Shown here in pieces: positions 4,610-34,505 of a stretch of 64,000 nucleotides of DNA (its first letter is position 1; each line of letters opens with the position of its first letter). The notes under the pieces were generated by a model that did no database searches, was not told the DNA's origin, and was given only the letters and a program-made list of their open reading frames with translations. Both the position numbers and the translations under genes were made by a program. Location: positions 1 to 64,000 of IMG/VR virus record IMGVR_UViG_3300020438_000007; one strand, given 5' to 3'.

Positions 4610-4960
4610 TTAGAAAACGTACTTAGCACCGACTTTAACACCGTATCCATTGTCTGCACCATCAGCAGTTTGGAAAGTTACTTCACCATAACCAAGAACT
4701 GTCTCTGACAAATCAACAGATCCACCTGCCTTAGCAAGGAATTCTGTGTCGCCATCAGTACCGTCAGGTGAGTTTACGATAGGACCGCCTTGAACGAACC
4801 AGTTGGAACCTTCGTAACCAAGTGCGAACTCAGTTGTATTTCCAGTGTAGTCCCCACCAGTGAATGAAGAATTGGCTTCTACATTTACATAAGGACCTGC
4901 GAACGCGGCACCAGCGAAAAGGGGTGCAGCAGCTAAAGCTGCGATTACATTTTTGAACAT
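4610..4960 (-). CDS. Small outer-membrane beta-barrel-like protein
   Basis: Signal peptide (..AGAAFA|GP), amphipathic beta strands and a C-terminal KYVF typical of BAM substrates. Confidence 0.75.
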   Translation of the reverse strand: MFKNVIAALAAAPLFAGAAFAGPYVNVEANSSFTGGDYTGNTTEFALGYEGSNWFVQGGPIVNSPDGTDGDTEFLAKAGGSVDLSETVLGYGEVTFQTADGADNGYGVKVGAKYVF

Positions 4961-5145: not shown

Positions 5146-5179
5146 TATTTAGTATACCACATGATCGATATCGCGTCAA
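5146..5179 (-). promoter_or_regulatory. Sigma70 promoter overlapping a late promoter
   Basis: TTGACG(5179-5174)-17 bp-TATACT(5156-5151); CTAAATA at 5152-5146. Confidence 0.8.
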
Positions 5180-5186: not shown

Positions 5187-5993
5187 TTATCCCTGACCTT
5201 GATTTCTGGGATCACCACCAGCGATCCTACCTAGATAAGGATCAAAATCGGATAACATATCAATGGTGATATCCCCACCTCTTGTATTCCAGAGTTCTCT
5301 GAGACCATCGTGACTACCCCTATGGAAGACCTCAATGTGTTCCTCATGGATTGAGGAACCTAGTTCGATCTTGTATAGGAAGACAGGACAGGCATAAGCT
5401 GCACCTGAGTTGTAGATCAGGTCATCAGCGACAGGTCTGGGTTTCACGCCATTGTCGAGTTTGTATTTCTCTCCTCTGACATGAAGTTTCAATAGTTTCT
5501 GAGCATGATGTCTAGTTATTACATAACATGCAGTAGAAAAGTCATTAATAAATCTACGATGAACCTGTACATGTAATTCGCCAGGGCAAATTACTGCAAC
5601 TTGGACTGTATCCCAGTCGTATGGCATCCTAGAGATGAATTGTCTCCATGTAAATGTCCAGAACTGTGCGATACTAATATCACAATCATCTTCCATGATG
5701 ATTGCATAGGGTTCATCAGTCTCTTCAACAAAATGTTTGAGTGCTTTGAGGTGTGATGTTACACATCCTATCTCTCCAGCAGTAATACTATCTGGATACT
5801 TACCAGTTAATATATCACTTAGATCATCCCCTGTAGAGGGTCTACCATCGTATGCAGAGATACGAGTATAGTTTTCTATCTCCCATTCCTTAAGTTGATT
5901 TGACATCCACTCCATTCTCTCTGGCTGTTCATCCAGATTAATAATGTAAAGAGGACCGAATCCTTTAAGTTTGTATGCGGCTTTATTTGACAT
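5187..5993 (-). CDS. Glycosyltransferase family 25
   Basis: YIINL...ER, GEIGCVTSH and IMEDD motifs. Confidence 0.85.
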   Translation of the reverse strand: MSNKAAYKLKGFGPLYIINLDEQPERMEWMSNQLKEWEIENYTRISAYDGRPSTGDDLSDILTGKYPDSITAGEIGCVTSHLKALKHFVEETDEPYAIIMEDDCDISIAQFWTFTWRQFISRMPYDWDTVQVAVICPGELHVQVHRRFINDFSTACYVITRHHAQKLLKLHVRGEKYKLDNGVKPRPVADDLIYNSGAAYACPVFLYKIELGSSIHEEHIEVFHRGSHDGLRELWNTRGGDITIDMLSDFDPYLGRIAGGDPRNQGQG

Positions 5994-6492
5994 CGAAAAA
6001 GAATGTTTGTGTGAGTCTACTTGTTTCTAATGTGTTCCCGAAGCCAGGAACTATACTTCTATGATACAACACTTTGCCGCGATACGCAACCAGTCTATTG
6101 TAAATATTTCCTACACCGATATTCATATCACTATCGGGAGACTGATAGATAGCAGTTCCAGAATCAAGAATAGGATTGGGAGTCAGATATAATACTGCTG
6201 CCCACTCTCCTTGATCTTCTCCCTGACTATCAACATGAACCCAAGTTTCTGTTCCTTCTTGGCATGATTGAAAACAAAAACTATCCTGTGTCCAATCCCA
6301 TACTATCTCTCCTCCGAGAGTAGTCTTTAGTTTGGTCTCTACCTCTGTCTGTAGATCACCACCCAAAGCAGTATTTGATCTGACACCTGGCACAGATTTT
6401 TGAATCCTATCATAATCTAAGGATAAGGCATGAAACCTTATCCTGTCTGGGTCATCTAAAAAATTATCTATTACAATTAGATTACGTTCCAT
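5983..6492 (-). CDS. 2OG-Fe(II) oxygenase-like protein
   Basis: IVIDNF, HVD, VLYL, NRLV..., HRS and RLTQTFF motifs. Confidence 0.7.
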   Translation of the reverse strand: MERNLIVIDNFLDDPDRIRFHALSLDYDRIQKSVPGVRSNTALGGDLQTEVETKLKTTLGGEIVWDWTQDSFCFQSCQEGTETWVHVDSQGEDQGEWAAVLYLTPNPILDSGTAIYQSPDSDMNIGVGNIYNRLVAYRGKVLYHRSIVPGFGNTLETSRLTQTFFFDVK

Positions 6493-6560
6493 TGCTCAAC
6501 CTGACAGACCAAAAAATAGCCAGAGATTTTTTTACGGTATTTTTGAAACTAAAAGTGAAA

Positions 6561-7418
6561 TTAGGTAACGATCCAACCATCACAATATAAATCCTTTAGA
6601 TTTTTATCTTTGTAATCTGGCCCGAACCATTGCTTAGGTGCAACAACTTTACCTCTACCATTTTGTAACCATGCACCCCACCATGATAAGGAGGAGTTGG
6701 CGATGATTGCACCAGAGCATAAACTCATGATGCAAATATCAACAAATGGTTCATAAGATCCATCAGGATATTTGTCTGTTGGTTCTGATATGAGGAACCT
6801 ATCATCAGCAAAGAACTCTTGTTCTTTTACCCACTCAGGAGAGTCCGAACATACAACCACAGGTTGATCCTCTGGGAACTCCTTGAGTGCCTTCTCATAG
6901 TATTCTACGGGTTGTGGAGGGTGTTGACCAGAACATTCGGTGTAAGACCATTTGAATCCTCTGGCATCGACTAGGTTGGGATCTCCTCTCCTAACATGCA
7001 GAAACAATGGAGCCTGATCTAATGAATCTACCATCTCCTTACAAGGTCCTAGAATAGAATCATGAAAAGTAAAATCTCTCCTGATATCTTGTTCTATATT
7101 TTTAAAATATTTTTCTGTCTGAAAGAATCCAAATAAACTTACATCATTAGGACACATCCTATGGAGTTCTTCATCAAACTCAAAATGTTTTTCGATTACA
7201 ACAGGAGCATGACCTCTATCAAGAACTGCAAGATTACTTCTTCCCACACTCTCTAATGTAAATGCTCTGTGTAAACTATAATTATCTACTCTCTTGGATT
7301 CAAAAGGTGGAATACCAAACTCGTATCCACGCATCGCAGAGATACCCCTAACGGCAGCATATTGAAACATCTGATTACCTAGTCTGCCTAGGTTTCCCAT
7401 TTGATTAAAGGCCAGCAT
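6561..7418 (-). CDS. Glycosyltransferase family 11 (alpha-1,2-fucosyltransferase-like)
   Basis: GRLGNQMFQY, HVRRGD and IIANSSLSWWGAWL motifs. Confidence 0.92.
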   Translation of the reverse strand: MLAFNQMGNLGRLGNQMFQYAAVRGISAMRGYEFGIPPFESKRVDNYSLHRAFTLESVGRSNLAVLDRGHAPVVIEKHFEFDEELHRMCPNDVSLFGFFQTEKYFKNIEQDIRRDFTFHDSILGPCKEMVDSLDQAPLFLHVRRGDPNLVDARGFKWSYTECSGQHPPQPVEYYEKALKEFPEDQPVVVCSDSPEWVKEQEFFADDRFLISEPTDKYPDGSYEPFVDICIMSLCSGAIIANSSLSWWGAWLQNGRGKVVAPKQWFGPDYKDKNLKDLYCDGWIVT

Positions 7419-8241
7419 TTAGTTCTTCCCCCCTACGTTTGATGTAGTCTAGTTTTGAATAATATTGTGTAACGGACTCTTTATCTTGAGTCCTAATCCA
7501 GTTCCACAATCTATCGTTGTCTTGAAACTTAGGATTGTGGTAGTGTGAATTGAATGTTCTACCGTGTTCAAAGTGGTAGATGTCATCAATAACTCTGCCA
7601 ACTTTAAATCCAAAAAGATTTAGTCTGTAATAAAACTCACAATCTTCTGCACCCCATGAGATAAATTCTTCATTCCATAGTCCAGCAGATACTTCTGCGG
7701 TTTTAGTTATCATCTGACCCCATCCAATAGACGACGGAATCCTAACTTTAGCATCTTTCAGAACTTCAAAGTCAGCATCAGATCCATCATGTGATGATAG
7801 AAAATTATCCAATAGTTGATCAGAATAAGTTACTGCCCACTGATAGATACCACATCCGAAAGGATAGACAGCATCAGATCCTTCCCTCGTGATGGCACGG
7901 TGAGCAAGTTCATGTGAGTTCTTCGGAACAACAACGTCCACATCATGATTATAAATGATGGGAGTGTCAGCGAGAACACATAGGTCATTAAGGATTCTAG
8001 TTTTATGAAAGAACGTCTCGGTACTCTGTTCAAAAACATGTTTGAGTTGTGATGTGTCCTTTACATAATTTTTAATACGAGGTAAAGCACTCTCACTAAA
8101 GTGTGATTGAGTGTCAACTTCTTTAACAATAATCTTTGCTTCGGGGAAACATTTTAAGATATAGGTAACAGAAGTAATAACATTACGAAGTCTATCTTCT
8201 GTCTCAATCCTACATGGAAGTAGGTAGGTGAGGTCTTTCAT
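7405..8241 (-). CDS. GT-A fold glycosyltransferase (GT2/GT7 C-terminal type)
   Basis: DVD motif, WGAED motif and YHFEH. Confidence 0.8.
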   Translation of the reverse strand: MKDLTYLLPCRIETEDRLRNVITSVTYILKCFPEAKIIVKEVDTQSHFSESALPRIKNYVKDTSQLKHVFEQSTETFFHKTRILNDLCVLADTPIIYNHDVDVVVPKNSHELAHRAITREGSDAVYPFGCGIYQWAVTYSDQLLDNFLSSHDGSDADFEVLKDAKVRIPSSIGWGQMITKTAEVSAGLWNEEFISWGAEDCEFYYRLNLFGFKVGRVIDDIYHFEHGRTFNSHYHNPKFQDNDRLWNWIRTQDKESVTQYYSKLDYIKRRGEELNAGL

Positions 8242-9167
8242 TATTCTGGTTCAATATATGATGGATCATTATGTAATTTAACCCAACGTGGAGGAATCAA
8301 ATCGCTCATGTCATACATGTCATACTTAATTCCAAACCAAGGATCGGGGGCAACAACTTGCCAGTGTCTTTGGATAGAGTTTTTACCCATCTTATCTCCA
8401 CCTTTCTGCAACCATGCACCCCACCATGATAATGATGAGTTAGCAATGATACCACCACCGCATAGTGTCATAAGACAGAGATCAATGTATGGTACAGATG
8501 CACCATCTCCAAACTCCTCATACGAGGCATCAGAGAACAGGAATCTATCCCCCTGTAACCATTCTTGTTCCTTACACCAATCAATAGTATCAGAAACAAC
8601 TACAACATTCTTATCTTCTGGAAACTTTGATAGTGCCTGAATGTAATATTCTTTCTTACAAATAGGATGATACTCTTGCACCATTTGATAAGACCATTTC
8701 TCTCCTCTTCTGCCTGTCACATTAGGATTACCTCTGCGAACATGTAGGAAGATATTATTATCTTGTCCACCATTCCCATCAATAAATTCTTGACATGGTT
8801 CTAGATATTCTTTCTTGAATGTAAAGTCATGTCTAATGTCGGCAGAGATACTTTCAAAATAATATTCTGTCTGAAAATTACCAGAGAAGTTAGTGTTGTC
8901 TTCACACTCATTATAGATCTTCTCATTGAAAGCCATGTCTCTATAGACTTCCTGTTTAGCAAAGAATGGTTCTCCCTGATTCTCTGGGAGACAACCACTC
9001 AATTCAAAGGCATCAAACAAACCATAGTTGTCTAACCTATCTGCATTTGGGCCTGGTACTACCCAATTAAACCCACGGTGTGCAGCAACACCTCTTACAA
9101 AAGCATACTGGAACATTTGATTCCCAAGTCTACCTTCGTTACCTAATCCTTGAAATGAAATAGCCAT
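8241..9167 (-). CDS. Glycosyltransferase family 11
   Basis: GRLGNQMFQY, HVRRGN and IIANSSLSWWGAWL motifs. Confidence 0.92.
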   Translation of the reverse strand: MAISFQGLGNEGRLGNQMFQYAFVRGVAAHRGFNWVVPGPNADRLDNYGLFDAFELSGCLPENQGEPFFAKQEVYRDMAFNEKIYNECEDNTNFSGNFQTEYYFESISADIRHDFTFKKEYLEPCQEFIDGNGGQDNNIFLHVRRGNPNVTGRRGEKWSYQMVQEYHPICKKEYYIQALSKFPEDKNVVVVSDTIDWCKEQEWLQGDRFLFSDASYEEFGDGASVPYIDLCLMTLCGGGIIANSSLSWWGAWLQKGGDKMGKNSIQRHWQVVAPDPWFGIKYDMYDMSDLIPPRWVKLHNDPSYIEPE

Positions 9168-10012
9168 TATTTAATCAATTTAATGTAGGGATACTCATCA
9201 GACATTCGACCATCATAATTCTTAAACTCATCATTTGATTCTAAGTCATAATAGAAGAATTGTCTACCATATCTAGGTACAGTTTTCTGCCATCCTAGAA
9301 AATTTATAACACCACTTGGAGTGGAAGTAATTGATTGATCTATAAGATCTTCATTACCATTCCAACTCCAAGGAACACAAGAGTCAACAGTAATGATAGT
9401 TGATTTACTTTTGAAAGCAGTCATTCTGAGGAACCCCTCACTATAACCACTAAAAGCATCATTCCTTTTATCATTTCTATTCCATTTCATACCATTAGTA
9501 GCGTGAAATATAATAGATAAATTTCTATCCACAAGATGTCTCTCACAAAAAGCAATACCCATCTCTTCTGAACTGCCCCACATATCATTACATACCATCC
9601 CAACAACAGGAAGAGAATCTAAGTAAAAATATCTTATGGGATCAGTTTCTAATCTACCCAAGCAGTAGTCTGAGGGAATACAATAAGTCTTATGAGTTAT
9701 TGTATTCAATTTTCCAGACTTATCATAATGTCTGATTTGATTTCTATGAATCAAACCAATGTGTTCTTTTTCTTTGAATAATGTTCCTAAGTGTAGTCCA
9801 ACTCCAGTATTGTGTTGTTCTATTTCTTTAAGAGCATCTTTCAATTCTTCATCTTTATCTTGCCAACCATTACAGTATCCAGATAAAGCACCCTCTGGTG
9901 TTAGGAGGTGATCAACTGCATTTTGTTTAGCCCAATCTAATGATTTTAATATCTCTATCTTATTAGATTGAATATTAGAACCAACAGGAATCTGAGCCCC
10001 TGCAATTCTCAT
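9167..10012 (-). CDS. Carbon-nitrogen hydrolase (nitrilase superfamily)
   Basis: MRIAGAQ start; catalytic triad E (TPEG), K (HKTY) and C (VCND). Confidence 0.8.
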   Translation of the reverse strand: MRIAGAQIPVGSNIQSNKIEILKSLDWAKQNAVDHLLTPEGALSGYCNGWQDKDEELKDALKEIEQHNTGVGLHLGTLFKEKEHIGLIHRNQIRHYDKSGKLNTITHKTYCIPSDYCLGRLETDPIRYFYLDSLPVVGMVCNDMWGSSEEMGIAFCERHLVDRNLSIIFHATNGMKWNRNDKRNDAFSGYSEGFLRMTAFKSKSTIITVDSCVPWSWNGNEDLIDQSITSTPSGVINFLGWQKTVPRYGRQFFYYDLESNDEFKNYDGRMSDEYPYIKLIK

Positions 10013-10013
10013 G

Positions 10014-10868
10014 TTACCAATAGTGTGTCTGCCAACGGGCAGGAACCATCATACTTGTATCTAAGTGTGACATGGCAGAACCATACCACTTCTCTGGATC
10101 AGGGGCGATGACTTTACCCCTATCCCTTTGCAACCATGCACCCCACCAACTGAATGAACTGTTAGCAATGATTGCACCAGAACAAAGACTCATCAAACAT
10201 AGATCAACCTGAGGCAGAAGAGTATTCTGCATCTGTCCTGTGCCATCAATAGTTTGATATTCATATCTCTCAGGATTATCATTGAAGATAAACCTATCGT
10301 TCTCAAAGAATGATTGTTTCTTACACCAATCAATATCATCTGTGAATACAAAGCATGGAGTATCAGGACTCCAAAATTCTAACGCAGTCTCAAAATATGA
10401 TAGCGGGAGGATGGGATGGAATTCTTCTCTTCCGATGTTGTCAGACTGTCTAATGTGAAGAAAAATAGGAGGGCTATCCAAACTATTGATGTAAGCAGTA
10501 CAAGGTTCGAGAACATCTTTCTTAAAAGTGAAATCTTCAAGGATCTGATCTGCAATGTGTACAAAGTAATCTTCTGTCTGTAGATAGGCATCTATATTGA
10601 CACCATCTGTACAATAAAATAATCCTTCATCAAAAGCATGTGTAGATTCTTTTACTGTCATGGCATCATTGAACCCAAGATTCTCAGGTTTTACATGCTT
10701 CATTTCAAAGGTATCAAACAATCCATAATTATCTTTATGATTGCAGTCAGGTGGTGGAATCATCCACTGATACTGATTATAATTTGCGATTCCTCTGAGT
10801 GAGGCATACTGGAACATTTGGTTTCCAAGTCTACCATTACTACCGAGGCGATTATAACTAATCGTCAA
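10014..10868 (-). CDS. Glycosyltransferase family 11
   Basis: GRLGNQMFQY, HIRQSD and IIANSSFSWWGAWL motifs; TTG start. Confidence 0.9.
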   Translation of the reverse strand: MTISYNRLGSNGRLGNQMFQYASLRGIANYNQYQWMIPPPDCNHKDNYGLFDTFEMKHVKPENLGFNDAMTVKESTHAFDEGLFYCTDGVNIDAYLQTEDYFVHIADQILEDFTFKKDVLEPCTAYINSLDSPPIFLHIRQSDNIGREEFHPILPLSYFETALEFWSPDTPCFVFTDDIDWCKKQSFFENDRFIFNDNPERYEYQTIDGTGQMQNTLLPQVDLCLMSLCSGAIIANSSFSWWGAWLQRDRGKVIAPDPEKWYGSAMSHLDTSMMVPARWQTHYW

Positions 10869-12016
10869 AGGTCAATCCTCCATGTCTTCTCATGTATTTC
10901 ATTATAGTTCTTGACGAAGATAAGACTATCGCCATAATCTTCTTCTAGTTCCTCGCTATATTCATCAACAACAGCATCAATCTCTTGAACATATACCGTG
11001 TGACCATCCTTTAAAAGATCTTCTACTAGTCTAAGTCGTGGACTTTCAACTATAAGATCACATCCTATCTTGTAACCAATACTATCAATAAAGAAAGGTA
11101 GTCCGTCTACATTTCTTTCTACACAGTAGTTCTTAATGAACTCTGCATGTGCTTCATTGAAATCATCAGTTACTTGAGGAAGACTATACTTAAGACCAAC
11201 CTTATCAGCATAGTGTCCTAAAGCACGGTTGTCACGGGGCAGACAAGGACCTCCGAAACCTAAACCATAGTTCAAATATTTAGACCCAATCCTACTGTCC
11301 TGTCCGATAGATGATAGAACGTTTTTGATCTCATCACCACACCCAGAATTGTATAGAATCTGACCCATCATGTTAGCATAACTGATCTTATATGTAAGGA
11401 AACAATTAATACCAATCTTAGTAATCTCTGCAGCAGTATTAGACATGGGGTAGAAGTCTACATCTCTATCCATGATTCCACAGTAGATTGATTTGATAAG
11501 TTCAAATCCTTCCTCATCATTGCCACCACACAGAATCATATCTGCATTTCTCATGTCTCTGATAATTGTTCCCTGTGCAACAAACTCAGGACTATAGAAT
11601 ACACTTATACCTCTATCCTCCAATGTTTTGTCTACCTTATCAACAAAGCCTGGATTGGTTGTGCATCCAACAATAAATTTCTTACCCTCTAAATTAGGAG
11701 ATCTAATTAGATCAGACACCACTTCATCAACTAAACTACAATCGTAACTACCATCTTCTAGAGATGGCGTAGGAACAAAGGTAAAGATAACATCAGAAGA
11801 TTTTATAACATCAATATTACTAGTAGTTGCTCTAAGTTTTGTTGATCGAAGTAAAAGATCTTCTACCTCTGGTTCATTACTATAAAGTTCTTTAGCGGTA
11901 AGTTTATTGACATAACTTGGGTTTATGTCAGAAACATATACATCATGACCAGCGGACTCTGCAAGCAGGGCAAAACAAATGCCAAGTCTTCCAGCACCGA
12001 TAACACCGATTTTCAT
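10865..12016 (-). CDS. UDP-glucose/GDP-mannose dehydrogenase family protein
   Basis: GAGRLG Rossmann motif, VPTP, SPEF and GFGGPCLPRD catalytic Cys motif. Confidence 0.92.
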   Translation of the reverse strand: MKIGVIGAGRLGICFALLAESAGHDVYVSDINPSYVNKLTAKELYSNEPEVEDLLLRSTKLRATTSNIDVIKSSDVIFTFVPTPSLEDGSYDCSLVDEVVSDLIRSPNLEGKKFIVGCTTNPGFVDKVDKTLEDRGISVFYSPEFVAQGTIIRDMRNADMILCGGNDEEGFELIKSIYCGIMDRDVDFYPMSNTAAEITKIGINCFLTYKISYANMMGQILYNSGCGDEIKNVLSSIGQDSRIGSKYLNYGLGFGGPCLPRDNRALGHYADKVGLKYSLPQVTDDFNEAHAEFIKNYCVERNVDGLPFFIDSIGYKIGCDLIVESPRLRLVEDLLKDGHTVYVQEIDAVVDEYSEELEEDYGDSLIFVKNYNEIHEKTWRIDL

Positions 12017-12023
12017 TGTGAAA

Positions 12024-12785
12024 TTAAACCTCTAATTTGTACGTTGGGATAGGATCCATTTTATGTTTGTTTTGGGCATTAAATCTGTTCAAGATTTCTA
12101 AGGCAGGACCTGCACCAGTTTCCATTGCCTCTTCTAGTTGTTCGTATGAAGCACCAATCTGGTCTTCATCGTTTCTACCATCCTCCCACAGTCCATCTGT
12201 AGGAGTTGCATTGATGATCTCAGTAATCACTCCGAGTTCTCTTCCGAGCTCTCTGACTTCTGATTTATAAAGGTCCGCAATCGGAGCAATGTCAACCCCA
12301 CCATCACCATACTTAGTATAAAAACCGACTCCATAGTCCTCCACTTTGTTTCCTGTTCCAACCACTATACCACCCACATTGGCAGCGACATGATATAGTG
12401 TCACCATCCGTAGTCTGGATTTAGTATTGGCTTTCGCCATTGGATTACCAGTATACTCCACACCTACCTCACTTGTCAAATCAGACATAAGTTTAGCATA
12501 GGATTCTGATAGATCTGCTTTTAGAATTTTCACATTAGGATACATTGAACTTAACCAATACATGTGTGCATCGGATAGAGTTTCTTGTTCTTTGTTTTGA
12601 TTCAATGGCATACCTACAAGGTAAGTCGGTTTACCTGTTTTTACTGCAAGAGTAGAAGCAACAGCAGAATCAATTCCACCAGACACTCCTACTACAAAAC
12701 TATTAATATTATTTGTGTGTGTATATTTGCACAACCACCCAACCATATCAATGGTGAGTGATTTATAATCTTTGATTCGATTCAT
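12024..12785 (-). CDS. nadE: NH3-dependent NAD+ synthetase
   Basis: SGGIDS PP-loop, NTKSRLRM, GTGNKVE, YTKYGDG, PTDGLW and DEDQIG motifs. Confidence 0.93.
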   Translation of the reverse strand: MNRIKDYKSLTIDMVGWLCKYTHTNNINSFVVGVSGGIDSAVASTLAVKTGKPTYLVGMPLNQNKEQETLSDAHMYWLSSMYPNVKILKADLSESYAKLMSDLTSEVGVEYTGNPMAKANTKSRLRMVTLYHVAANVGGIVVGTGNKVEDYGVGFYTKYGDGGVDIAPIADLYKSEVRELGRELGVITEIINATPTDGLWEDGRNDEDQIGASYEQLEEAMETGAGPALEILNRFNAQNKHKMDPIPTYKLEV

Positions 12786-13594
12786 TTTCTAGTGGCTAGA
12801 ATGACAGTGTTTTCATAATCACGACCTGTATCAAAGGTGTAATCTTTTTTGATCTTCTCAATGAAATCATTATAATAGAATTCATTAAAGTTGACAAGGT
12901 TGTATATCATATAAACATATTTTGAATTAGTAATAACCTTATCGTAATATGCCATCTGTGTAGGAAGATCACACTCGGATAGAGCGTAGTTACTGATGAA
13001 TAAATCTACATCTTTAATCTCTTCGTACTCTGTACATGGAATACATGTTACCTTATCTTTCAGATCTTCAAACTGATCTAGATATTTTCTCTGCAAGGCA
13101 GATACTTCTGGTAAGTCGATCAAAATATATTGATCAAACTCACACACTTTACTCAAGACTCTACAGAGTCCACCATATCCACCACCTACTTCAACAACCT
13201 TACCAACTTCAGCACCATCAAGTAAGAATCCCATCTCAAAAGTATTCTTCATATACCTAAGAGTTGTAGGAGATATTGTACCAGTCATGCCTGGATACGG
13301 ATACAGTTCTGGATTACCAATCTTGTCATTCTCCTTGAATGACTCAAGGTTATCCCATACGGCATCCTCATTCATATCCTTACAGATGTTTAGATATGCC
13401 TGTCCTTGATCCTTGAGTACATGTTCTAGAATAGTTTTGTACTTTGGATTGGATTTGAAGTTTGCAAAGGCATCATCAGATGCAACTGCTTCCTTACATG
13501 CTTCAAGATATTCTACAGCGATTTGATCTTCTGCTTGCCATCCGCTGCGATCATCTTGAACAGCAGTGGCAGATACGTCAATGATTTCACTCAT
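12782..13594 (-). CDS. Putative sugar O-methyltransferase (SAM-dependent)
   Basis: VVEVGGGYGGL, LIDLPE and ISNYALSE motifs; inside the glycan cluster. Confidence 0.8.
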   Translation of the reverse strand: MSEIIDVSATAVQDDRSGWQAEDQIAVEYLEACKEAVASDDAFANFKSNPKYKTILEHVLKDQGQAYLNICKDMNEDAVWDNLESFKENDKIGNPELYPYPGMTGTISPTTLRYMKNTFEMGFLLDGAEVGKVVEVGGGYGGLCRVLSKVCEFDQYILIDLPEVSALQRKYLDQFEDLKDKVTCIPCTEYEEIKDVDLFISNYALSECDLPTQMAYYDKVITNSKYVYMIYNLVNFNEFYYNDFIEKIKKDYTFDTGRDYENTVILATRK

Positions 13595-14568
13595 GTTAAT
13601 TGTGGTTTCTGATTTCTAAGTGGGTCTAGTTGTGCAAAGTAGTTTCCATACATGTAATCCTCTGCGACTCTCATGCACTGAGCAGTCTCAAAGTTTTCTT
13701 GTATTACATCTTTCTTGGATTCATAATACTCTGGTGTGAGTTTATCCCAAGGAATATTCTCCCAAGGTGTTTTCTCATCTAGGAAGATGATACCTTCTGG
13801 ATTGAAGTATTGTGCTACTCCAACAGTTCCATAATAGACTGGAATAGTTCCACACGCAAAACAATCTGTCAACTTCTCCGTAAAGTAAGTTGGATAGTTT
13901 GCATTTTCTACTGCAAAAGAGAACATATAATCTCTCAATGCTCTTGACTTTTCTGTCAGTGGTAACTCTTGGGGTAATCCCCAACCAAATAAATCATCAC
14001 CACCTTGTTTTTTGAAGTAAGATTCTACAACTTTAAGGCGACGTTGATGTCCTAGAGTATATCCTTTGTTAGATGCGACCATTGAGACAAGTTTTGACTT
14101 CTTATAGACTGCCCTATCCATGACCCAAGGAGCAGCATTAGATAAACAATAGAGAAATTTGCCATCTGCGCCACTCTCATTCGTTAGTCTCTGATCAGCA
14201 GTAAAGATCCCATCAACCCGACTAGCAACAAAATCATAATTCTCTTCTATGAATTTATACTGTTCTGGAATAATTTCCCTTGACTCTAACAACCAGATAA
14301 ACTTTGGGTTATCGCTGGTGTCCTCCAAGACTTTTAGTGCCTCCCCATTCACATAGAGATTTACTAGACCAGTTCCGTTACGAATCCATCTAGTGTAAAC
14401 CGACCTATTGTTTGCCGAAGTAGATGGTTCTAATGAATCATTACAATAAAGATTGATAGGAAATTTTGAGTCAGGTCCTAGAACAGGAAAGTCCATTCCT
14501 GTAGGACTCTTCTTGGCTTTATCAACTGCCTCTCTCAGTGCTGCTGCCTCAGCATCATACTTATTCAT
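13591..14568 (-). CDS. Glycosyltransferase family 10 (alpha-1,3-fucosyltransferase-like)
   Basis: YMFSFAVEN...YFTEKLTDCF..GTIPVYYG motif. Confidence 0.85.
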   Translation of the reverse strand: MNKYDAEAAALREAVDKAKKSPTGMDFPVLGPDSKFPINLYCNDSLEPSTSANNRSVYTRWIRNGTGLVNLYVNGEALKVLEDTSDNPKFIWLLESREIIPEQYKFIEENYDFVASRVDGIFTADQRLTNESGADGKFLYCLSNAAPWVMDRAVYKKSKLVSMVASNKGYTLGHQRRLKVVESYFKKQGGDDLFGWGLPQELPLTEKSRALRDYMFSFAVENANYPTYFTEKLTDCFACGTIPVYYGTVGVAQYFNPEGIIFLDEKTPWENIPWDKLTPEYYESKKDVIQENFETAQCMRVAEDYMYGNYFAQLDPLRNQKPQLT

Positions 14569-15478
14569 AGTCTTTCCTCATCTCCTCAAATACTTTTTTC
14601 AAACCTTCTGGAACCGATGTTTTGGGGTTCCAAAACTTCTGGATGAATGGGTCGGGAACGTTCCTAGCATCCTTTTGCACTTCATCCTTCGACTGTGCTG
14701 GAGTAACCGTGATCTCCTTGCCAATACCCGAAAATAATAACTTAATTTCAGACGCAATCTCCAACACAGTTGTATAAACACCAGTAGTAATATGAAGTTC
14801 ATCGTCAGAACAGAGATCGTGGTATGTCTCCATAACAGTCTCCAACGCCTCACAACAGTCCTCCGCATAAAGAAATTCCCTCGCTTCAGTTCCGTCTGTC
14901 ATCATATCTATATCACCAGACTCAAACCCTTTACGGATGAAATCTGTAATGACATGTGCCTTGTTCATGTCTTTCTCAATACCATATACATTCCAGAACT
15001 TGACAATCAATCCACCAAGAGACTTAGTATAAAGTTCACCAACTCTCTTCAATACACCATAAGGAGAGTAAGACATGTTACTCATCTGAGATGATGCAAA
15101 GACAAATGGTTTCTTGTGTTTCTCAAGTAGACCAAAGGCATTTGCCATCAGTCTTGTATTATTATCTATGAACTGAAAAGTATGTTGATACTTTTTAAGA
15201 TAGTGTGATCCTCCTACATCAAAGGCGAGGAAGTACACAAAATCTGCCATATAAATTTTGGCTTCAAGTTCACCATTAGGAATGACTGTCATGTCCTGTT
15301 CACTACCATTAGTGATATCAAACTCAAGGACTTCATTCCCCATACGATTAAGATAATCAGTCAGATATGCTCCAACTTGACCACCCGATCCCAATACTAA
15401 AATCTTACGAGGTTTTAAAGTCTCGTAATACATGTCTTCATAATCCATATTTGAAATAATAACCTCCATCAAATCCAA
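14561..15478 (-). CDS. NAD-dependent nucleotide-sugar epimerase/dehydratase
   Basis: GSGGQVG, YGVLK (YxxxK) and REFLYAED motifs. Confidence 0.88.
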   Translation of the reverse strand: MDLMEVIISNMDYEDMYYETLKPRKILVLGSGGQVGAYLTDYLNRMGNEVLEFDITNGSEQDMTVIPNGELEAKIYMADFVYFLAFDVGGSHYLKKYQHTFQFIDNNTRLMANAFGLLEKHKKPFVFASSQMSNMSYSPYGVLKRVGELYTKSLGGLIVKFWNVYGIEKDMNKAHVITDFIRKGFESGDIDMMTDGTEAREFLYAEDCCEALETVMETYHDLCSDDELHITTGVYTTVLEIASEIKLLFSGIGKEITVTPAQSKDEVQKDARNVPDPFIQKFWNPKTSVPEGLKKVFEEMRKDYE

Positions 15479-16056
15479 TCAACAGAATGCTTCTCATCAA
15501 AATTGACAAGACCTGTACCACTCATGTGGCCAATCTCAGTGACATTAATCTTAGGATATGTAATTCTATTCCAGAAGTCCTCGATCTCAGGCCATTGAGG
15601 TCCAATATCATCTAGGAGAACAATACCTTTCCAACCTTTCTCTTCTAAAAATTCAAACATCTCTTCCTCTGCCGTTCCATCATGAGGATCAACATCAATC
15701 ATTATAATAGAAATATGATCCCAATTCAAGTCATCCGATCTAAAGTCTTGAATCTTAAACTCGACATTATCTTTCTTGATTCCTTCTGATGCACCTTGCT
15801 CAACTAAGTCATAACTAATAACTCTATTTTTGTCATTGTATGATAGTGCAAGGGCAGAACCACCTGTCCTTGTACCAACATCTAAGATAATAGAATCATT
15901 GAATTGTGTAGATAACCAAGAATACAATCGGTATTCACTCTGACCAGCAGAGAGCCAGTCATTTGGGTTGAGTGATTGTTCTGCAAGATGCGAAACATCT
16001 AGACTACTGATTGCATCCTTATCAAGTTGAATTGTTTTCTTAGTTACTTTTCGCAT
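15469..16056 (-). CDS. Class I SAM-dependent methyltransferase
   Basis: LDVGTRTGGS, IDVDPH and LLDD motifs; start at MRKV. Confidence 0.75.
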   Translation of the reverse strand: MRKVTKKTIQLDKDAISSLDVSHLAEQSLNPNDWLSAGQSEYRLYSWLSTQFNDSIILDVGTRTGGSALALSYNDKNRVISYDLVEQGASEGIKKDNVEFKIQDFRSDDLNWDHISIIMIDVDPHDGTAEEEMFEFLEEKGWKGIVLLDDIGPQWPEIEDFWNRITYPKINVTEIGHMSGTGLVNFDEKHSVDWI

Positions 16057-17095
16057 GTTCCAATACCTTTGGTGTAATTTCAACTACGCCATGTTGACGA
16101 GATTTAATTTGTTCAGTGATCCAAGCATAAGTCTTGGAGATACCTTCTTCAAGAGTCTGTGAATAATCCCATCCAAGTTTCTCACGAATGAGATCATTGT
16201 TTGAATTACGTCCACGGACACCCAAAGGTGCATCGAGTTTGTGTGCCTTTCTAACAACCTTACCTGATACCTTAGCAGCAGTTTCTACTAACTGATTGAT
16301 AGTAACCATTTCTTCAGAACCAATGTTAACAGGTCCTGCAAAATCAGAATCAATCAGCCTACGAGTTGCTTCAATACACTCATCAATGAAGAGGAAGGAT
16401 CTCGTCTGCAATCCATCACCCCATACCTCGATCGTTCCTCCCACCTCTGGGAGTAGTGAGACCTTACGACAGATTGCGGCGGGAGCCTTTTCCTTTCCTC
16501 CATCCCATGTTCCTTCTGGTCCAAAAATGTTATGATAACGAGCCACAGAAACGTCAAGGTTGTAGTTGCGAGCATATGCAAAATACAATCTCTCTGAAAA
16601 TAGTTTCTCCCATCCATACTCAGAGTCTGGATTGGCTGGGTAGGCAGAGTTTTCACGACAATCAGGATTGTCTGGATCTAATTGATTATGTTCTGGGTAC
16701 ATACAAGCAGAACTAGAATAGAAGATTTTAGTTTTGTTTACATCTAACAATCTATTCAATGCAACTTGTTCGTTCAATACATTAAGATTGATCGAAGCTG
16801 AGTTGTGCATGATGTCAGCGGAGTGTTCATCTGTAAAGATATATCCAGCACCACCCATATCGGCAGCGAACTGGTAGATCTCATCGAAAGCATCTCCTTC
16901 CACATCTAAGACTCTTGCCACAAGTCCTACTTCTCTAAGATCACCTCGAACAAAATCATCGGCAGCACTCATAGAAAAATCGGGGTACTTAATATCAACG
17001 CCACGAACCCAATACCCTTCTGATCGTAGTCGTTTTACCATGTGACTTCCAATGAAGCCACCTGCACCCAATACTAGTGCTGTCTTCTTATCCAT
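16040..17095 (-). CDS. GDP-mannose 3,5-epimerase-like SDR enzyme
   Basis: GAGGFIGSH, AADMGG, SSACMYPE, YGWEK, KEKAPAA and WGDGLQTRSF motifs resemble the GME subfamily. Confidence 0.8.
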   Translation of the reverse strand: MDKKTALVLGAGGFIGSHMVKRLRSEGYWVRGVDIKYPDFSMSAADDFVRGDLREVGLVARVLDVEGDAFDEIYQFAADMGGAGYIFTDEHSADIMHNSASINLNVLNEQVALNRLLDVNKTKIFYSSSACMYPEHNQLDPDNPDCRENSAYPANPDSEYGWEKLFSERLYFAYARNYNLDVSVARYHNIFGPEGTWDGGKEKAPAAICRKVSLLPEVGGTIEVWGDGLQTRSFLFIDECIEATRRLIDSDFAGPVNIGSEEMVTINQLVETAAKVSGKVVRKAHKLDAPLGVRGRNSNNDLIREKLGWDYSQTLEEGISKTYAWITEQIKSRQHGVVEITPKVLEHAKSN

Positions 17096-17129
17096 AGTTG
17101 TATACAAGTTTGAGAAATAAACTTCATCT

Positions 17130-17136
17130 TATTTAT
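17130..17136 (-). promoter_or_regulatory. Late promoter ATAAATA heading the glycan operon
   Basis: Intergenic match 35 bp upstream of the GME-like start. Confidence 0.65.
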
Positions 17137-17140
17137 TGTA

Positions 17141-17878
17141 TCACGCACTGACCGTTTTCGCAATAACCGTATCCAAAATGTTCACAGTTGGAAACCAACC
17201 GAGCTCCATGAGAGGCATGATATCTGCACATAATGAATCAGGTTCATTAGGTGTGTCTTCCTTGATAGGAAGATGTCCCATACCCATGGCACTGGCCAAT
17301 TCTATTACAGAAGTTTTATGTCCTGTTCCAACATCAATCGTACCTGTAAATGAACTAGGAATCAAAGTCGCAATCGCTCTGACAACATCCAATACATGAA
17401 CCCAATCTCTCTCATGTCTTGTGATATACTTTGCAGTTCCTTGTTTCAACATTTCATATAACATATCATCTCTACTACCTTCCTCTGCCCAGACATTAAA
17501 AAACCTCATACCCACACTATTAGGTGGAGCCATGAGTTCATTTACTTTCTTTGTTATTGCATAAGGATTTTGCCACCAACCGTATGCACCAGCAGAACTT
17601 GCATACAACAAGCGAGTACCATACTTTCTACAATAATCAAATATGGGTTTAGATTTTTCAACGTTGTTCTCCCAGAATTTATCAGGATTATCTACACTAT
17701 CTCTGAGTGCAGCATAGGCAGCAAGATGAACTATGAGATCATAGTCTGCACATCCAACGTCTGCAAAGTCTCCTATGTCATCTGGTCTGTCCAGTCCATC
17801 AACATCAAAGATGTCACTGAGAAAATCAAAGACATGACTGCCAATGAAACCTTTGTGACCTGTTACTAATACTTTCAT
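17141..17878 (-). CDS. NAD-dependent epimerase/dehydratase
   Basis: VTGHKGFIG, HLAA, YAITK and RDWVHVLD motifs. Confidence 0.9.
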   Translation of the reverse strand: MKVLVTGHKGFIGSHVFDFLSDIFDVDGLDRPDDIGDFADVGCADYDLIVHLAAYAALRDSVDNPDKFWENNVEKSKPIFDYCRKYGTRLLYASSAGAYGWWQNPYAITKKVNELMAPPNSVGMRFFNVWAEEGSRDDMLYEMLKQGTAKYITRHERDWVHVLDVVRAIATLIPSSFTGTIDVGTGHKTSVIELASAMGMGHLPIKEDTPNEPDSLCADIMPLMELGWFPTVNILDTVIAKTVSA

Positions 17879-22464: not shown

Positions 22465-22624
22465 TCTCTTCCCTCCATTCTTCGTAAAAAGCTATGGCTT
22501 CCTCATAGGCACCCTGTTCGTACAGGTCATGAATCCTGTCAATGATGTAATCTTTTGTAAGTTTTTCCTCTTGATAATCTTGGGTGAATTGAGAGAGGTC
22601 GGATTGGAATGATGGGTCAAGCAT
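22457..22624 (-). CDS. Small acidic protein (55 aa), not in the ORF track
   Basis: MLDPSFQSDLSQFTQDYQEE...WREEIE fills the gap between its neighbours, overlapping each by 8 bp. Confidence 0.7.
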   Translation of the reverse strand: MLDPSFQSDLSQFTQDYQEEKLTKDYIIDRIHDLYEQGAYEEAIAFYEEWREEIE

Positions 22625-23054
22625 CGAAGTAGTCCTTTCGGTAGTAACGTCCTAGCACATTAGAATTATAGTATGCAGGCTCTCCGTTGTCAAGAGCCTC
22701 AGTCAATACGTTATTTAGAAAGAGTTGTCTGGTCTCCTCATAGTTGGTTTTTCCTAGTGTAGTATGAAGGGATATTATCTCTCTGCTAAAGGTGTCCTTA
22801 CCGTACTCCTTAACGTCGGCCTTGAGTTCTGGGGAACTTCCATAATACTTCTTCCAATCGGACTCTGAAGTAACTCTCCTTTTACCACCTTTTGGCTTAC
22901 GTCTCTGCACGAAATACTTTCTACCGATGTACTTTTTACCTGTTGTCTTATTAGTAATGAGGTAGACGAAACCGAAGAAATCGCCAATGTCGTCAGTAGT
23001 AAAAGGTTTACCCTCATATAGCCAGGGGTTTTCGTAAACTCCTCCTTCAACCAT
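22617..23054 (-). CDS. GIY-YIG family nuclease
   Basis: GFVYLITN..GKKYIGRK, YYGSS, a conserved E and YYN. Confidence 0.85.
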   Translation of the reverse strand: MVEGGVYENPWLYEGKPFTTDDIGDFFGFVYLITNKTTGKKYIGRKYFVQRRKPKGGKRRVTSESDWKKYYGSSPELKADVKEYGKDTFSREIISLHTTLGKTNYEETRQLFLNNVLTEALDNGEPAYYNSNVLGRYYRKDYFDA

Positions 23055-23193: not shown

Positions 23194-23351
23194 GACCAAA
23201 TCCTAGTTAGTTGACGAACATCTGTTACACCATAGAGTGCCTTGACAGTTCGTTCTGCATCCTCTCTTAAATTAGATGGTGAAAAGAATTCTACTTTTGT
23301 TAATCTATTTGAGTCAAGTAGAATCTGCGCTGACCACTTAGTTTCTTTCAT
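23190..23351 (-). CDS. Hypothetical protein (53 aa), not in the ORF track
   Basis: MKETKWSAQILLDSNRL...RIWS; ATGA overlaps at both ends. Confidence 0.65.
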   Translation of the reverse strand: MKETKWSAQILLDSNRLTKVEFFSPSNLREDAERTVKALYGVTDVRQLTRIWS

Positions 23352-24037
23352 GTCAATTTATTCCAAGTGTCTTTCCAATCTGTGACTGTCACAACCATAC
23401 CTAGTTTGTTATCTGTAATGGCATCTGCTAATGGTCTATCATTACCACCTTCTTCCATCCTATCTCCAAAGAATACTAAATCACCGTCAGGAAAGTCTCT
23501 AATGATCTGACCCTTATCACTTCCCTTACTTGAAATGTCAACACCTGTTATACCACCAACAAAGGCATGTAACTCTGGAAACTTTTCATTGAATCTAGTT
23601 GATATTCCTTCTCTCTCTTTCTTAATATCATCCCAATCACTATAAACTAATCTCTCTGTATGATTGGCACCTCTACCAACAATACTAAAGTTGACACAGC
23701 CTGGTCTTTCTTCTATATGGTTTCCTGTTCTTACAGGGAAGTGACTCTCATGTAGTTCTTCTAGAAGATGTTCCTTTGCATCTAATGGCAACGTCCAATC
23801 GTTTCTGAATGTCAGAAGATCTCCCTCATAAACATCATTACCAGCACAATTATACACCCTCTTACAATTACAGTAAAGAAGGTGTGTAATTTGTTCTATA
23901 GTTTTCTCTCTATTACTTCCTGTTACCAGATAAACTTCGTTTGCCAAGGCAAAACTGTTGAAGAATATTAGAAAGTCAGGGTCAATCTTTTGTCTACTGG
24001 GTGTGAGAGTCCCATCGACATCAAAAATATATTTCAT
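23348..24037 (-). CDS. HAD-IIB phosphomannomutase-like enzyme (eukaryote-type PMM)
   Basis: FDVDGTLTPSRQKI, IEER...NFSIVGR, DK and FFGDR..GGND motifs. Confidence 0.85.
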   Translation of the reverse strand: MKYIFDVDGTLTPSRQKIDPDFLIFFNSFALANEVYLVTGSNREKTIEQITHLLYCNCKRVYNCAGNDVYEGDLLTFRNDWTLPLDAKEHLLEELHESHFPVRTGNHIEERPGCVNFSIVGRGANHTERLVYSDWDDIKKEREGISTRFNEKFPELHAFVGGITGVDISSKGSDKGQIIRDFPDGDLVFFGDRMEEGGNDRPLADAITDNKLGMVVTVTDWKDTWNKLT

Positions 24038-32944: not shown

Positions 32945-32950
32945 TAAATA
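32944..32950 (+). promoter_or_regulatory. Late promoter ATAAATA
   Basis: Intergenic match upstream of 32969. Confidence 0.7.
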
Positions 32951-32968
32951 CTAAAAAGTACTAGCGAA

Positions 32969-33832: not shown

Positions 33833-33833
33833 T

Positions 33834-34436
33834 ATGTCACCATTAGCATTTGGAATTGGAAAGTCAAGGGGAGCTCAATTTGATGCTCCAGTATTCTACT
33901 CAAATTTATTACAGTTTTACTGGCACTGGACTGACGGTAAGGACTTTGATCTCAGATGTGAGTTCATTCGTCCTACTCAATTAGCTGGTCTAGTAGTAGG
34001 AACTGACAAACTATCTCAGATTGTAGATAGTGGTGGTTCAGTTACATACATGAAATGGGGTGGAGATAACACCCAAGACACAGAAGGATATGAAGGTGTA
34101 TACATTGACATAAATGCAATCAAAACTGTGCCAGGCGGACTTGCAAACAATGTTATAGAACTAGATTTCAGAGGTATGTGGTATGCAGAAGTTGGCACAA
34201 ACCCAGTAGTAGTAAGAGGTTCTGCATATCAAGGCGGAACAATGTCATTAGAAAGAGACACACCTAACGTGCCTGGATTTGGTTTTGTTAACGTAGGTTA
34301 CGCTCAATCCTTTACAAATTACAAAGAAAGTATACCCAAAGTTGTTACAAGTGTTGACCGAGAAGGAACTGGTCAACGATTAGGCCGCGCCATCATTGAC
34401 TTAAACACATTTGAGATAACTTTTCTAGATTACTAG
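33834..34436 (+). CDS. Hypothetical protein (probably structural)
   Basis: 200 aa, beta-rich, coupled to the fibre gene. Confidence 0.75.
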   Translation: MSPLAFGIGKSRGAQFDAPVFYSNLLQFYWHWTDGKDFDLRCEFIRPTQLAGLVVGTDKLSQIVDSGGSVTYMKWGGDNTQDTEGYEGVYIDINAIKTVPGGLANNVIELDFRGMWYAEVGTNPVVVRGSAYQGGTMSLERDTPNVPGFGFVNVGYAQSFTNYKESIPKVVTSVDREGTGQRLGRAIIDLNTFEITFLDY

Positions 34437-34471
34437 TATCAAATTGTATCAAATTATATAATTTCTCTGCG

Positions 34472-34479: not shown

Positions 34480-34505
34480 CAGGCAGACTAAGAGTGGGAA
34501 ATCAC

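Follow-up and report, generated by a model that had tools for sequence, protein, structure and literature searches.

Predicted L-galactose/L-gulose glycan module led by a GDP-mannose 3,5-epimerase gene and a composite promoter in a T4-like cyanomyovirus

In this work, we are asking what sugar is made by a compact run of glycan genes in a marine virus, and on which acceptor this sugar would be placed. The run occupies positions 5187-17878 of the window, as we call the whole 64,000-nucleotide stretch of DNA analysed, which is the first 64 kb of IMG/VR record IMGVR_UViG_3300020438_000007, a 230,739-bp virus genome estimated to be 99% complete. Judging by the sequences of psbA, hli-type neighbours, many 2-oxoglutarate (2OG)-Fe(II) oxygenases and T4-type structural genes, the source virus is a T4-like cyanomyovirus. 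Much of the marine Synechococcus and Prochlorococcus population is killed by T4-like cyanophages, whose glycan modules occupy hypervariable regions thought to tune host range. Along 92% of the glycan gene region, nucleotide identity to the Synechococcus phages S-SSM7 and S-SSM6a (Kyanoviridae, Lipsvirus) is 88%; identity to Sf-FS3 is 74%. The region contains 15 open reading frames (ORFs), all on the minus strand, and 14 of them, from 17095 down to 5187, overlap or are separated by gaps of at most 7 nt, except for a single gap of 68 nt. None of the cluster proteins has a transmembrane (TM) segment.

The best explanation that we can offer, and one we consider about as probable as not, is that the cluster is an S-SSM7-type "hyperplastic region" glycan module, in which a GDP-mannose 3,5-epimerase (GME) opens the way to L-galactose (L-Gal) or L-gulose (L-Gul) and to a methylated glycan on a host envelope glycolipid, under a composite early/late promoter; substrates, the assignment of donors to transferases, acceptor and timing are what we infer from the genes. 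In the proposed sequence of events the host would make GDP-D-mannose, the phage GME would turn it into GDP-L-galactose and/or GDP-L-gulose, and three GT11 and one GT10-like glycosyltransferases (GTs), members of families using GDP-beta-L-sugars, would transfer L-Gal/L-Gul residues. A 6-dehydrogenase would supply hexuronic acid, which a UXS/epimerase-like short-chain dehydrogenase/reductase (SDR) may process further, a GT25 and a GT-A enzyme would add hexoses from host UDP-sugars, and a NanM-type together with a second methyltransferase would O-methylate the product. The NadE-type protein would most probably be an NAD/NMN synthetase serving the NAD-dependent dehydrogenase and SDR chemistry. Transcription of the 14-gene unit would be shared by the host sigma-70 RNA polymerase and the phage late (gp55-type) machinery, both acting at the composite promoter.

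The gene on which this reading depends is the first one of the unit:

16040..17095, minus strand: GME homologue, 351 aa from the ATG at 17095, the same length as the S-SSM7 gene

A first-pass annotation, made from the letters alone, had described a GME-like enzyme at this place, and this was borne out. The product matches PDB 2c59, the GME of Arabidopsis thaliana, with E 4.6e-83, 282 bits and ~45% identity; the next SDR family comes at 1e-20, and all other SDR structures stay at or below 77 bits. In the HMMER alignment all five residues corresponding to C145, Y174, K178, K217 and R306 are conserved, the +2 offset of the PDB chain numbering being our own reading. Roles have been described for the Cys145/Lys217 acid-base pair, Tyr174/Lys178 and Arg306 (PMC6678494). 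Membership of the GDP-mannose 3,5-epimerase family (EC 5.1.3.18) as a true homologue is strongly confirmed by these alignments. Like the plant (2c59) and Methylacidiphilum fumariolicum (PMC6678494) enzymes, the window enzyme is an extended SDR (~45% identity) in which the acid-base Cys and Lys, the redox Tyr and Lys and the Arg that stabilises the thiolate are all aligned; unlike them it is viral, stands in no ascorbate pathway context and has a predicted activity. Homologues with 64-94% identity occur in 37 phage records, all of them cyanophages or marine single-cell viral contigs; one of these, S-SCSM1, has already been annotated and published as GME.

The supply of donor sugars was then read from what the genome lacks. 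The first-pass annotation had recognised no GDP-mannose 4,6-dehydratase in the window, and this holds for the entire 230,739 bp: no gmd was found, the GDP_Man_Dehyd model hitting only the three SDRs of the cluster and a fourth SDR near 105 kb, and the gmd equivalog model hitting nothing. No SDR of fcl grade is present anywhere in the genome, and the search of the remaining genome for gmd, fcl and manC, which that annotation had proposed, returned none of the three. ManC (NTP-transferase), phosphomannose isomerase and a Bac_transf priming transferase were likewise absent genome-wide. With neither ManC nor phosphomannose isomerase, the phage would depend on host GDP-mannose; marine Synechococcus and Prochlorococcus encode a bifunctional phosphomannose isomerase/GDP-mannose pyrophosphorylase (PMC9602691). 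The route suggested earlier, from Man-6-P through Man-1-P and GDP-Man to GDP-L-Gal, gains support in its GME step, but the phage has neither ManC nor phosphomannose isomerase, its phosphomannomutase (PMM)-like gene allows only a family-level HAD-IIB call (the NCBIfam HAD-IIB match being under its cutoff), and the route leaves out the dehydrogenase/NadE pair and an amidohydrolase described below.

Repeated linkage of the GME and GT11 genes is the best support available for the use of the GME product by the GT11 enzymes. The two co-occur in 6/6 cyanophage lineages examined and are adjacent in phage Bellamy, where the module is divided into two sub-modules ~20 kb apart, one with GME followed directly by a GT11-like gene and the other with the order carbamoyltransferase-x-NadE-methyltransferase-dehydrogenase-GT25. 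That the sub-modules are separable points to another nucleotide sugar as the substrate of the dehydrogenase. The linkage recurs in a bacterium, in a polysaccharide locus of a Candidatus Kapaibacterium metagenome-assembled genome (MAG; JAPLFL010000120.1, 43355-56011), which reads GME (60% identity to the phage enzyme), NadE, GT11, a DUF268 methyltransferase-like gene and, further on, Wzx. Gene linkage makes the passage from GME via GDP-L-galactose to fucosyltransferase-family enzymes a well supported prediction. An observation in its own right is that PCAW01000016.1, labelled as a Methanobacteriota archaeon MAG, contains the Bellamy-type order carbamoyltransferase-x-NadE-methyltransferase-dehydrogenase-GT25, whose products share 63-64% identity with their window counterparts. 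Most likely a contig from a cyanophage was wrongly assigned to the archaeal MAG.

The order GME-methyltransferase-SDR-GT10-NanM methyltransferase-NadE-dehydrogenase-GT11-GT11-GT-A-GT11-GT25 is kept in S-SSM7, Sf-FS3 and two metagenomic contigs (TARA and ENA) at 68-96% amino-acid identity. S-SSM7/S-SSM6a (SSSM7_252-265) and Sf-FS3 (SfFS3_217-230) share with the window the genes, their order and the composite promoter, protein identity being 90-96% for S-SSM7 and 59-86% for Sf-FS3. S-SSM7 differs in lacking the nitrilase-family gene; Sf-FS3 has this gene, lacks the 245-aa SDR and carries a terminator-like hairpin before the promoter. The records deposited for both use generic names ("nucleotide-sugar epimerase", "UDP-glucose 4-epimerase"), and GME is not among them. 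The DUF6445 2OG oxygenase of the cluster is shared by the window with S-SSM7 and Sf-FS3 alone. In P-TIM68 the module is reduced to GME, NadE, dehydrogenase, one GT11 and GT-A, and the homologue of the 245-aa SDR stands directly beside GT25; in the window the ~11-kb module is located between these two genes.

Expression of the unit can be predicted from a single site, placed in the only sizeable gap at the cluster head:

17130..17163, minus strand: composite promoter TTGCGA-17 nt-TACAAT, overlapping the late motif (AC)AATAAATA, in the 45-nt gap ahead of the GME gene

The late motif AATAAATA lies at 17137-17130 on the minus strand, with ATAAATA at 17130-17136, 35 nt upstream of the GME ATG at 17095; it heads 14 of the 15 genes, the 245-aa SDR (17141-17878) being upstream of it. 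The bare count of ATAAATA in the window, 13 against 17.3 expected, is not above chance. Placement over the whole genome is more informative: ATAAATA stands 8-70 nt upstream of a gene start, in the sense orientation, in 23/43 cases (53%) and CTAAATA in 14/31 (45%), compared with 2-21% for unrelated A/T-rich control heptamers in the same placement. Genes headed in this way encode the tail tube, scaffold, portal, sheath, sheath stabiliser and fibre/baseplate proteins, and the motif of this genome matches the published late consensus NATAAATA (PMC2984593). We therefore take ATAAATA at 17130-17136 for a credible late promoter. S-SSM7, Sf-FS3 and two divergent contigs of metagenomic phages all keep the site, also where another gene lies upstream. 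In alignments, a sigma-70-type element with 17-nt spacing, whose -10 box overlaps the late motif, is conserved in six lineages:

Window: -35 TTGCGA, 17 nt, -10 TACAAT, then AAATA
S-SSM7: -35 TTGCAC, 17 nt, -10 TACAAT, then AAATA
Sf-FS3: -35 TTGCAG, 17 nt, -10 TATAAT, then AAATA
TARA contig L010: -35 TAGACA, 17 nt, -10 TATACT, then AAATA
ENA contig L011: -35 TTGACA, 17 nt, -10 TATACT, then AAATA
P-TIM68: -35 TTTACA, 17 nt, -10 TATAAT; late motif not intact, only the sigma-70-like part

Bellamy has neither the sigma-70-like element nor the late motif. Generic sigma-70 and terminator scans of the region gave chance-level results overall, and weight was given only to the conserved site upstream of GME. 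Overlap of the late motif with a conserved sigma-70-type promoter probably means early plus late expression, not late-only; overlapping early and late promoters have been proposed for "middle-like" genes of RB49 and S-PM2 (PMC2984593). The earlier claim of a late motif heading the run gains credit from its genome-wide placement, but the claim of late timing has to give way in part to the overlapping sigma-70-like promoter, the only part which P-TIM68 keeps. Fragments nearly identical to the cluster and its upstream genes were found in four RNA libraries of two studies, one contig bridging the promoter at 17067-17420; these matches are assembled Logan contigs that carry no starts, strand or timing. 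In Sf-FS3 (locus ~16300-16345) a hairpin with a T-run was seen just upstream of the GME composite promoter, a clean unit boundary which the window lacks.

The remaining genes of the cluster, together with the PMM-like gene upstream, are as follows:

17141..17878, minus strand: short extended SDR, 245 aa; Pfam Epimerase 1.7e-22; GxxGxxG and YxxxK; upstream of the composite promoter
15469..16056, minus strand: small SAM-dependent methyltransferase-like protein, 195 aa; weak FtsJ 6.5e-3; motif I ILDVGTRTGG
14561..15469, minus strand: extended SDR, ~302 aa; Pfam Epimerase 1.4e-19; GSGGQVG and YxxxK
13591..14568, minus strand: GT10-like protein (alpha-1,3-fucosyltransferase family); PF00852 3.2e-8, 33.9 bits against a cutoff of 23.9
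12782..13594, minus strand: NanM-type sugar O-methyltransferase; TIGR04371 9.1e-21, 74.6 bits against a cutoff of 44
12024..12785, minus strand: NadE-type (NH3-dependent NAD synthetase family) PP-loop amidoligase; PF02540 6.6e-46; TIGR00552 165 bits against 63.65
10865..12016, minus strand: nucleotide-sugar 6-dehydrogenase (UDP-Glc/GDP-Man dehydrogenase family); TIGR03026 210 bits against a cutoff of 189.8
10014..10868, minus strand: GT11 paralogue c, TTG start; PF01531 1.1e-15; degenerate motif I HIRQSD
9167..10012, minus strand: nitrilase-superfamily (CN-hydrolase) amidohydrolase, 281 aa, predicted from homologues, triad and AlphaFold2 (AF2) model
8241..9167, minus strand: GT11 paralogue b; PF01531 2e-15; motif I HVRRGN
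7405..8241, minus strand: GT-A fold glycosyltransferase, galactosyltransferase C-terminal-domain-like (Glyco_transf_7C); PF02709 2.8e-5, 24.1 bits against a cutoff of 23
6561..7418, minus strand: GT11 paralogue a; PF01531 5.9e-18; canonical motif I HVRRGD
5983..6492, minus strand: DUF6445 2OG-Fe(II) oxygenase-like protein; PF20043 7.1e-9; HVD motif; overlaps the GT25 start
5187..5993, minus strand: GT25, last gene of the unit; PF01755 1.3e-16
23348..24037, minus strand: PMM-like HAD-IIB protein; PF03332 8.2e-16; DVDGT nucleophile motif; 5.5 kb upstream, outside the operon-like unit

Searches of Pfam, NCBIfam and PDB recovered every class of the first-pass list (three GT11, one GT10, a GT25, a GT-A enzyme, two methyltransferases, a dehydrogenase, three SDRs and the PMM-like gene), each where it had been placed, and the O-methylation proposed there has its NanM-type sugar O-methyltransferase; what that list had overlooked were the NadE-type synthetase, the nitrilase-superfamily amidohydrolase and the 2OG oxygenase. 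The GT11 proteins score 65.6, 57.3 and 58.1 bits against PF01531 (cutoff 23.9), with mutual identity of 43-47%, and their motif I, which in the HxRRGD form binds GDP-fucose, is HVRRGD at 6561-7418, HVRRGN at 8241-9167 and HIRQSD at 10014-10868. The GT10-like protein matches Helicobacter pylori FucT (2nzw, 4.9e-7) in the GDP-fucose-binding region, where FSFAVENANYPTYFTEK, carrying the FxxxFEN...YxTEK nucleotide-sugar motif, aligns to FucT residues 223-311; its N-terminal acceptor domain is not recognisably GT10. In the SDR at 14561-15469 the C-terminal half resembles UDP-glucuronate decarboxylase/4-epimerase (PDB 2b69 UXS, 6e-12, residues 157-305). The 195-aa methyltransferase-like protein is kept in S-SSM7, Sf-FS3 and the metagenomic contigs, and the GT-A protein has DxD candidates and an identically annotated Sf-FS3 homologue. 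The dehydrogenase has the catalytic-Cys motif GFGGPCLPRD and matches UGDH 3vtf at 1e-35 and AlgD 1mfz at 2e-24; it reaches no equivalog model, and Pfam did not detect its C-terminal nucleotide-binding domain. Solved relatives of the GT25 are limited to human procollagen galactosyltransferase 1 structures (3e-5). Two ORFs with short G-X-Y runs and Lys in the Y position occur at 182185-183777 and 206005-207702 of the genome. Collagen-like hydroxylysine glycosylation by the 2OG oxygenase and GT25 was considered and set aside as a speculative lead, these being the only two such ORFs genome-wide and the oxygenase being absent from most relatives.

The NadE-type protein, whose best PDB match is 3fiu (1.3e-39) and whose PP-loop is VSGGIDS (SGGxDS type), is encoded, in 8/8 phage lineages examined, within a glycan cluster and either beside the sugar dehydrogenase or with a single gene between them. 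Among these lineages are pelagiphage HTVC008M, where GME is absent, and an uncultured phage of 642 kb. In a maximum-likelihood tree seven cyanophage NadEs form one clade (98/93) beside marine Chloroflexota NadEs, the sister relationship being weakly supported (93/67), while the pelagiphage NadE groups with gammaproteobacterial NadEs (100/99) and is separated from the cyanophage clade by starred branches. Since the two fall into different bacterial lineages, the NadE-dehydrogenase pairing would have arisen at least twice. Of 59 alignment columns with conservation of 90% or more among 50 bacterial NadEs, the phage proteins keep 54, the changes being conservative, and the sister bacterial genes lie in housekeeping contexts (zapD, coaE, bamD, cox, folP). 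Among bacterial relatives, 52/54 loci have no cluster genes, the exceptions being the phage contig PCAW01000016.1 and the Kapaibacterium locus, whose NadE has 395 aa with a ~170-aa C-terminal extension and may be a housekeeping enzyme, as it is the only strong NadE in that 4.6-Mb MAG. An ordinary NAD/NMN synthetase supporting NAD-dependent sugar chemistry thus appears more likely than an amidoligase, and the NadE-type gene of a sister phage has been annotated as NAD+ synthase (PMC12801897). A 339-aa ORF at 57099-58118 (minus strand) has a weak nucleotidyltransferase/NMN-adenylyltransferase-like N-terminus (TIGR01526, 19 bits); if its product is a true NMN adenylyltransferase, it could cooperate with NadE in NAD synthesis.

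The product of 9167-10012 is 59% identical to the "CN hydrolase" of Sf-FS3, and E40/K108/C141 are invariant in 30 homologues, 19/30 of which match PF00795, a profile missed by the protein itself. Its AF2 model (pLDDT 91) retrieves amidases, Nit2, carbamoylases and NadE glutaminase domains in Foldseek with probability 1.0 and E ~1e-14, and on this predicted alpha-beta-beta-alpha fold with its Glu-Lys-Cys triad the protein is classed as a nitrilase-superfamily amidohydrolase. The gene is an accessory insertion, found in the cluster only in the window and Sf-FS3; in other cyanophages members of the family are flanked by 2OG-oxygenase and gp59/gp32 genes, with no NadE nearby. A glutamine-dependent NadE split into the nitrilase-family and NadE proteins was rejected as a general feature, the nitrilase gene being absent from S-SSM7, the TARA/ENA contigs, P-TIM68 and Bellamy.

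Proteins with at least 2 TM-like segments are limited genome-wide to D1 and one 1175-aa ORF, with no flippase, polymerase or ligase-like membrane protein, and the cluster, having no priming transferase, flippase/transporter, polymerase or ligase, is not a self-contained Wzx/Wzy- or ABC-type O-antigen/capsule locus. Soluble enzymes and the lack of any export, polymerase or ligase function lead us to cytoplasmic assembly on a pre-existing acceptor. Most likely, in our view, this would be a host lipid-linked envelope glycan of lipooligosaccharide/lipopolysaccharide (LOS/LPS) type, so that the surface of the infected cell would be altered. We favour it because GT10, GT11 and GT25 usually decorate LOS/LPS, because the genes neighbouring the cluster encode outer-membrane-protein-like barrels (Phage_OMP), and because the promoter predicts early expression. 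Bacterial enzymes of these three families typically act at the inner membrane face, and none of the soluble GT families of the cluster needs phage-encoded export to act on host lipid-linked acceptors. The closest parallel is LPS fucosylation with Lewis antigens in H. pylori (GT10 FutA/B, 2nzw; GT11 FutC), where soluble GT10 and GT11 enzymes take GDP-beta-L-sugars as donors and decorate, on the cytoplasmic side, a glycan linked to lipid, and where the nucleotide-binding region of GT10 aligns with ours; the donor there is GDP-L-fucose made via gmd/fcl, whereas the window genome encodes only GME. Host cell-wall modification is also the published reading for sister phages (PMC12801897, PMC9602691, PMC2984593).

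The same pathway could instead, as the first-pass annotation had suggested, place its glycan on virion proteins, Ser/Thr-rich fibres or other structural ones, in the cytoplasm late in infection, which we think doubtful and yet deserving attention. Mycobacteriophages are reported to do so, glycosylated capsid or tail proteins having reportedly been demonstrated by Freeman et al. in 2023 (ref. 61 of PMC12801897), and in chloroviruses virus-encoded glycosyltransferases glycosylate virion proteins. Those systems are similar in their virus-encoded soluble glycosyltransferases, some with methyltransferase activity, and in cytoplasmic glycans made without host export machinery; they differ in that glycosylated virion proteins were demonstrated there, while the cyanophage module is known here from its genes. 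A late-type motif validated on structural genes stands ahead of the unit, the enzymes are all soluble in a genome without export machinery, and the only solved relative of the GT25, overlapped by the 2OG oxygenase, is a protein (collagen hydroxylysine) galactosyltransferase. Fibre-like ORFs at 28176-35018 (plus strand) and 40979-44278 (minus strand) with late motifs contain 20-28% Ser+Thr, the genome median being 12%; 28176-30731 matches tail-fibre and baseplate-wedge-connector PHROGs, and the N-terminus of 40979-44278 is gp9/10-like. Ser/Thr-rich fibres, however, are also frequent where phages do not glycosylate, the late motif shares its site with a conserved sigma-70-like promoter, which is all that P-TIM68 keeps (Bellamy having neither), the bacterial GT families typically modify LOS/LPS, and our literature search gave no report of glycosylated cyanophage virions. 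Another possibility concerns the donor: the fucosyltransferase-family enzymes might mainly use host GDP-L-fucose and build a fucosylated Lewis-like glycan, with a minor or different sugar, L-gulose for example, as the sole contribution of GME. Both GT10 and GT11 are defined as families of fucosyltransferases, the GDP-Fuc motifs of the GT10-like protein and GT11 paralogue a are intact, and in S-SCSM1 GME lies beside gmd and fcl with fucosyltransferases (PMC9602691), an arrangement in which GME and fucose synthesis coexist in this virus group. We consider it unlikely, given a 99%-complete genome with neither gmd nor an Fcl-grade SDR, the position of GME as first gene of the unit, and its company with GT11 in all six cyanophage lineages and at one locus of a bacterial MAG. 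The earlier statement that GT10/GT11 use GDP-L-sugars from GME is accordingly favoured by linkage and by the intact motifs, but host GDP-L-fucose as donor is possible.

The adenylating enzyme of the cluster invites a third departure, in which NadE would be an ATP-dependent amidoligase turning the hexuronate of the adjacent dehydrogenase into hexuronamide, with the nitrilase-family protein supplying ammonia where present. Carboxylate adenylation followed by ammonia attack is the chemistry of this superfamily, the nitrilase fold resembles glutaminase domains of Gln-dependent NadE, and NadE sits beside or one gene from a sugar dehydrogenase in glycan clusters of eight phage lineages. It is this convergent pairing, arisen at least twice, for which we retain the idea, at low probability: the conserved NadE columns are kept with no sign of altered specificity, the sister bacterial genes are in housekeeping contexts, the nitrilase gene is absent from most clusters and located elsewhere in other cyanophages, and no publication combining uronamide and NAD synthetase was found in the literature search. 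A bolder combination, in which the module glycosylates its own Ser/Thr-rich fibre/baseplate proteins with an O-methylated L-Gal/L-Gul glycan and the NadE-dehydrogenase pair is a new hexuronate amidoligase module, has in our estimate only a small chance; if true, S-SSM7-group cyanophages would be the first marine phages with a virus-built virion glycan. Against the preferred reading, a GME-derived glycan on a host envelope glycolipid, several points count. The envelope acceptor is argued from enzyme families, neighbours and published opinion, and the late motif with the nearby Ser/Thr-rich fibre genes fits virion glycosylation equally; homology of the GME fixes neither product ratio nor rules out a modified substrate; the altered motif I of two GT11 enzymes (HVRRGN, HIRQSD) means that their donors may differ, and the host may supply GDP-L-fucose; the dehydrogenase is approximately equidistant from UGDH and AlgD; and the RNA-library contigs show presence only, not proof of transcription or timing.

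Part of this picture was already known. The gene set is in the deposited records of S-SSM7 (2010) and Sf-FS3, the module type appears in a table for S-SCSM2R, with GT10, GT11, UDP-Glc dehydrogenase, epimerases and NAD+ synthase (ORF240-248), and a cyanophage enzyme annotated as GDP-mannose 3,5-epimerase, beside fucosyltransferases and with its GDP-L-Gal/L-Gul product stated, is discussed for S-SCSM1 (PMC9602691). S-SCSM1 has gmd and fcl next to GME, unlike the window genome, which has neither. In the S-SCSM1 and S-SCSM2R papers NadE is interpreted as an NAD+ counter-defence gene, the GTs are assigned to modification of host cell wall or DNA, and neither promoter architecture nor the NadE-dehydrogenase pairing is discussed. 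Added here are a new S-SSM7-group genome, GME without gmd/fcl in a complete genome, the conserved composite promoter, the nitrilase accessory insertion and the convergent NadE-dehydrogenase pairing. GME without a fucose pathway predicts L-galactose or L-gulose, sugars rarely reported from bacterial envelopes, in infected cells or virions, so that the long-standing vague label "LPS genes" becomes a testable pathway. Experiments can also start from the conserved overlap of early and late promoters and from the repeated pairing of NadE with the dehydrogenase.

Some minor observations were made outside the cluster. A second sugar-nucleotide cluster at ~104,300-110,500 of the genome, beyond the window, contains a DUF6445 oxygenase, a 277-aa SDR, two further 2OG oxygenases, an RfaE/HldE-like sugar kinase (277 aa) with an adenylyltransferase (131 aa), both of heptose-activation type, and a 495-aa flavin-dependent halogenase/monooxygenase-like ORF. 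A 782-aa ORF at 24072-26420 (minus strand) has DUF6321 and DUF3008 domains and a Gly/Asn-rich C-terminal tail, in a stretch with a strongly negative AT skew (-0.28). At 22617-23054 (minus strand) there is a SegE-type GIY-YIG homing endonuclease (PF19835, 3e-56), and S-SSM7 (SSSM7_239), P-TIM68 (gp170) and Bellamy (gene 182) each have, in the corresponding position, a 438-nt gene labelled "NAD synthetase". This label looks like a propagated misannotation, homology to the endonuclease being judged from position and length only. Directly past the GT25 stop, at 5151-5179 (minus strand), lies a sigma-70-like site TTGACG-17-TATACT with an extended TG, ahead of a small ORF and a cyanophage outer-membrane-protein-like beta-barrel gene (4610-4960, minus strand; PF24653, 5e-42), which suggests a separate transcription unit downstream.

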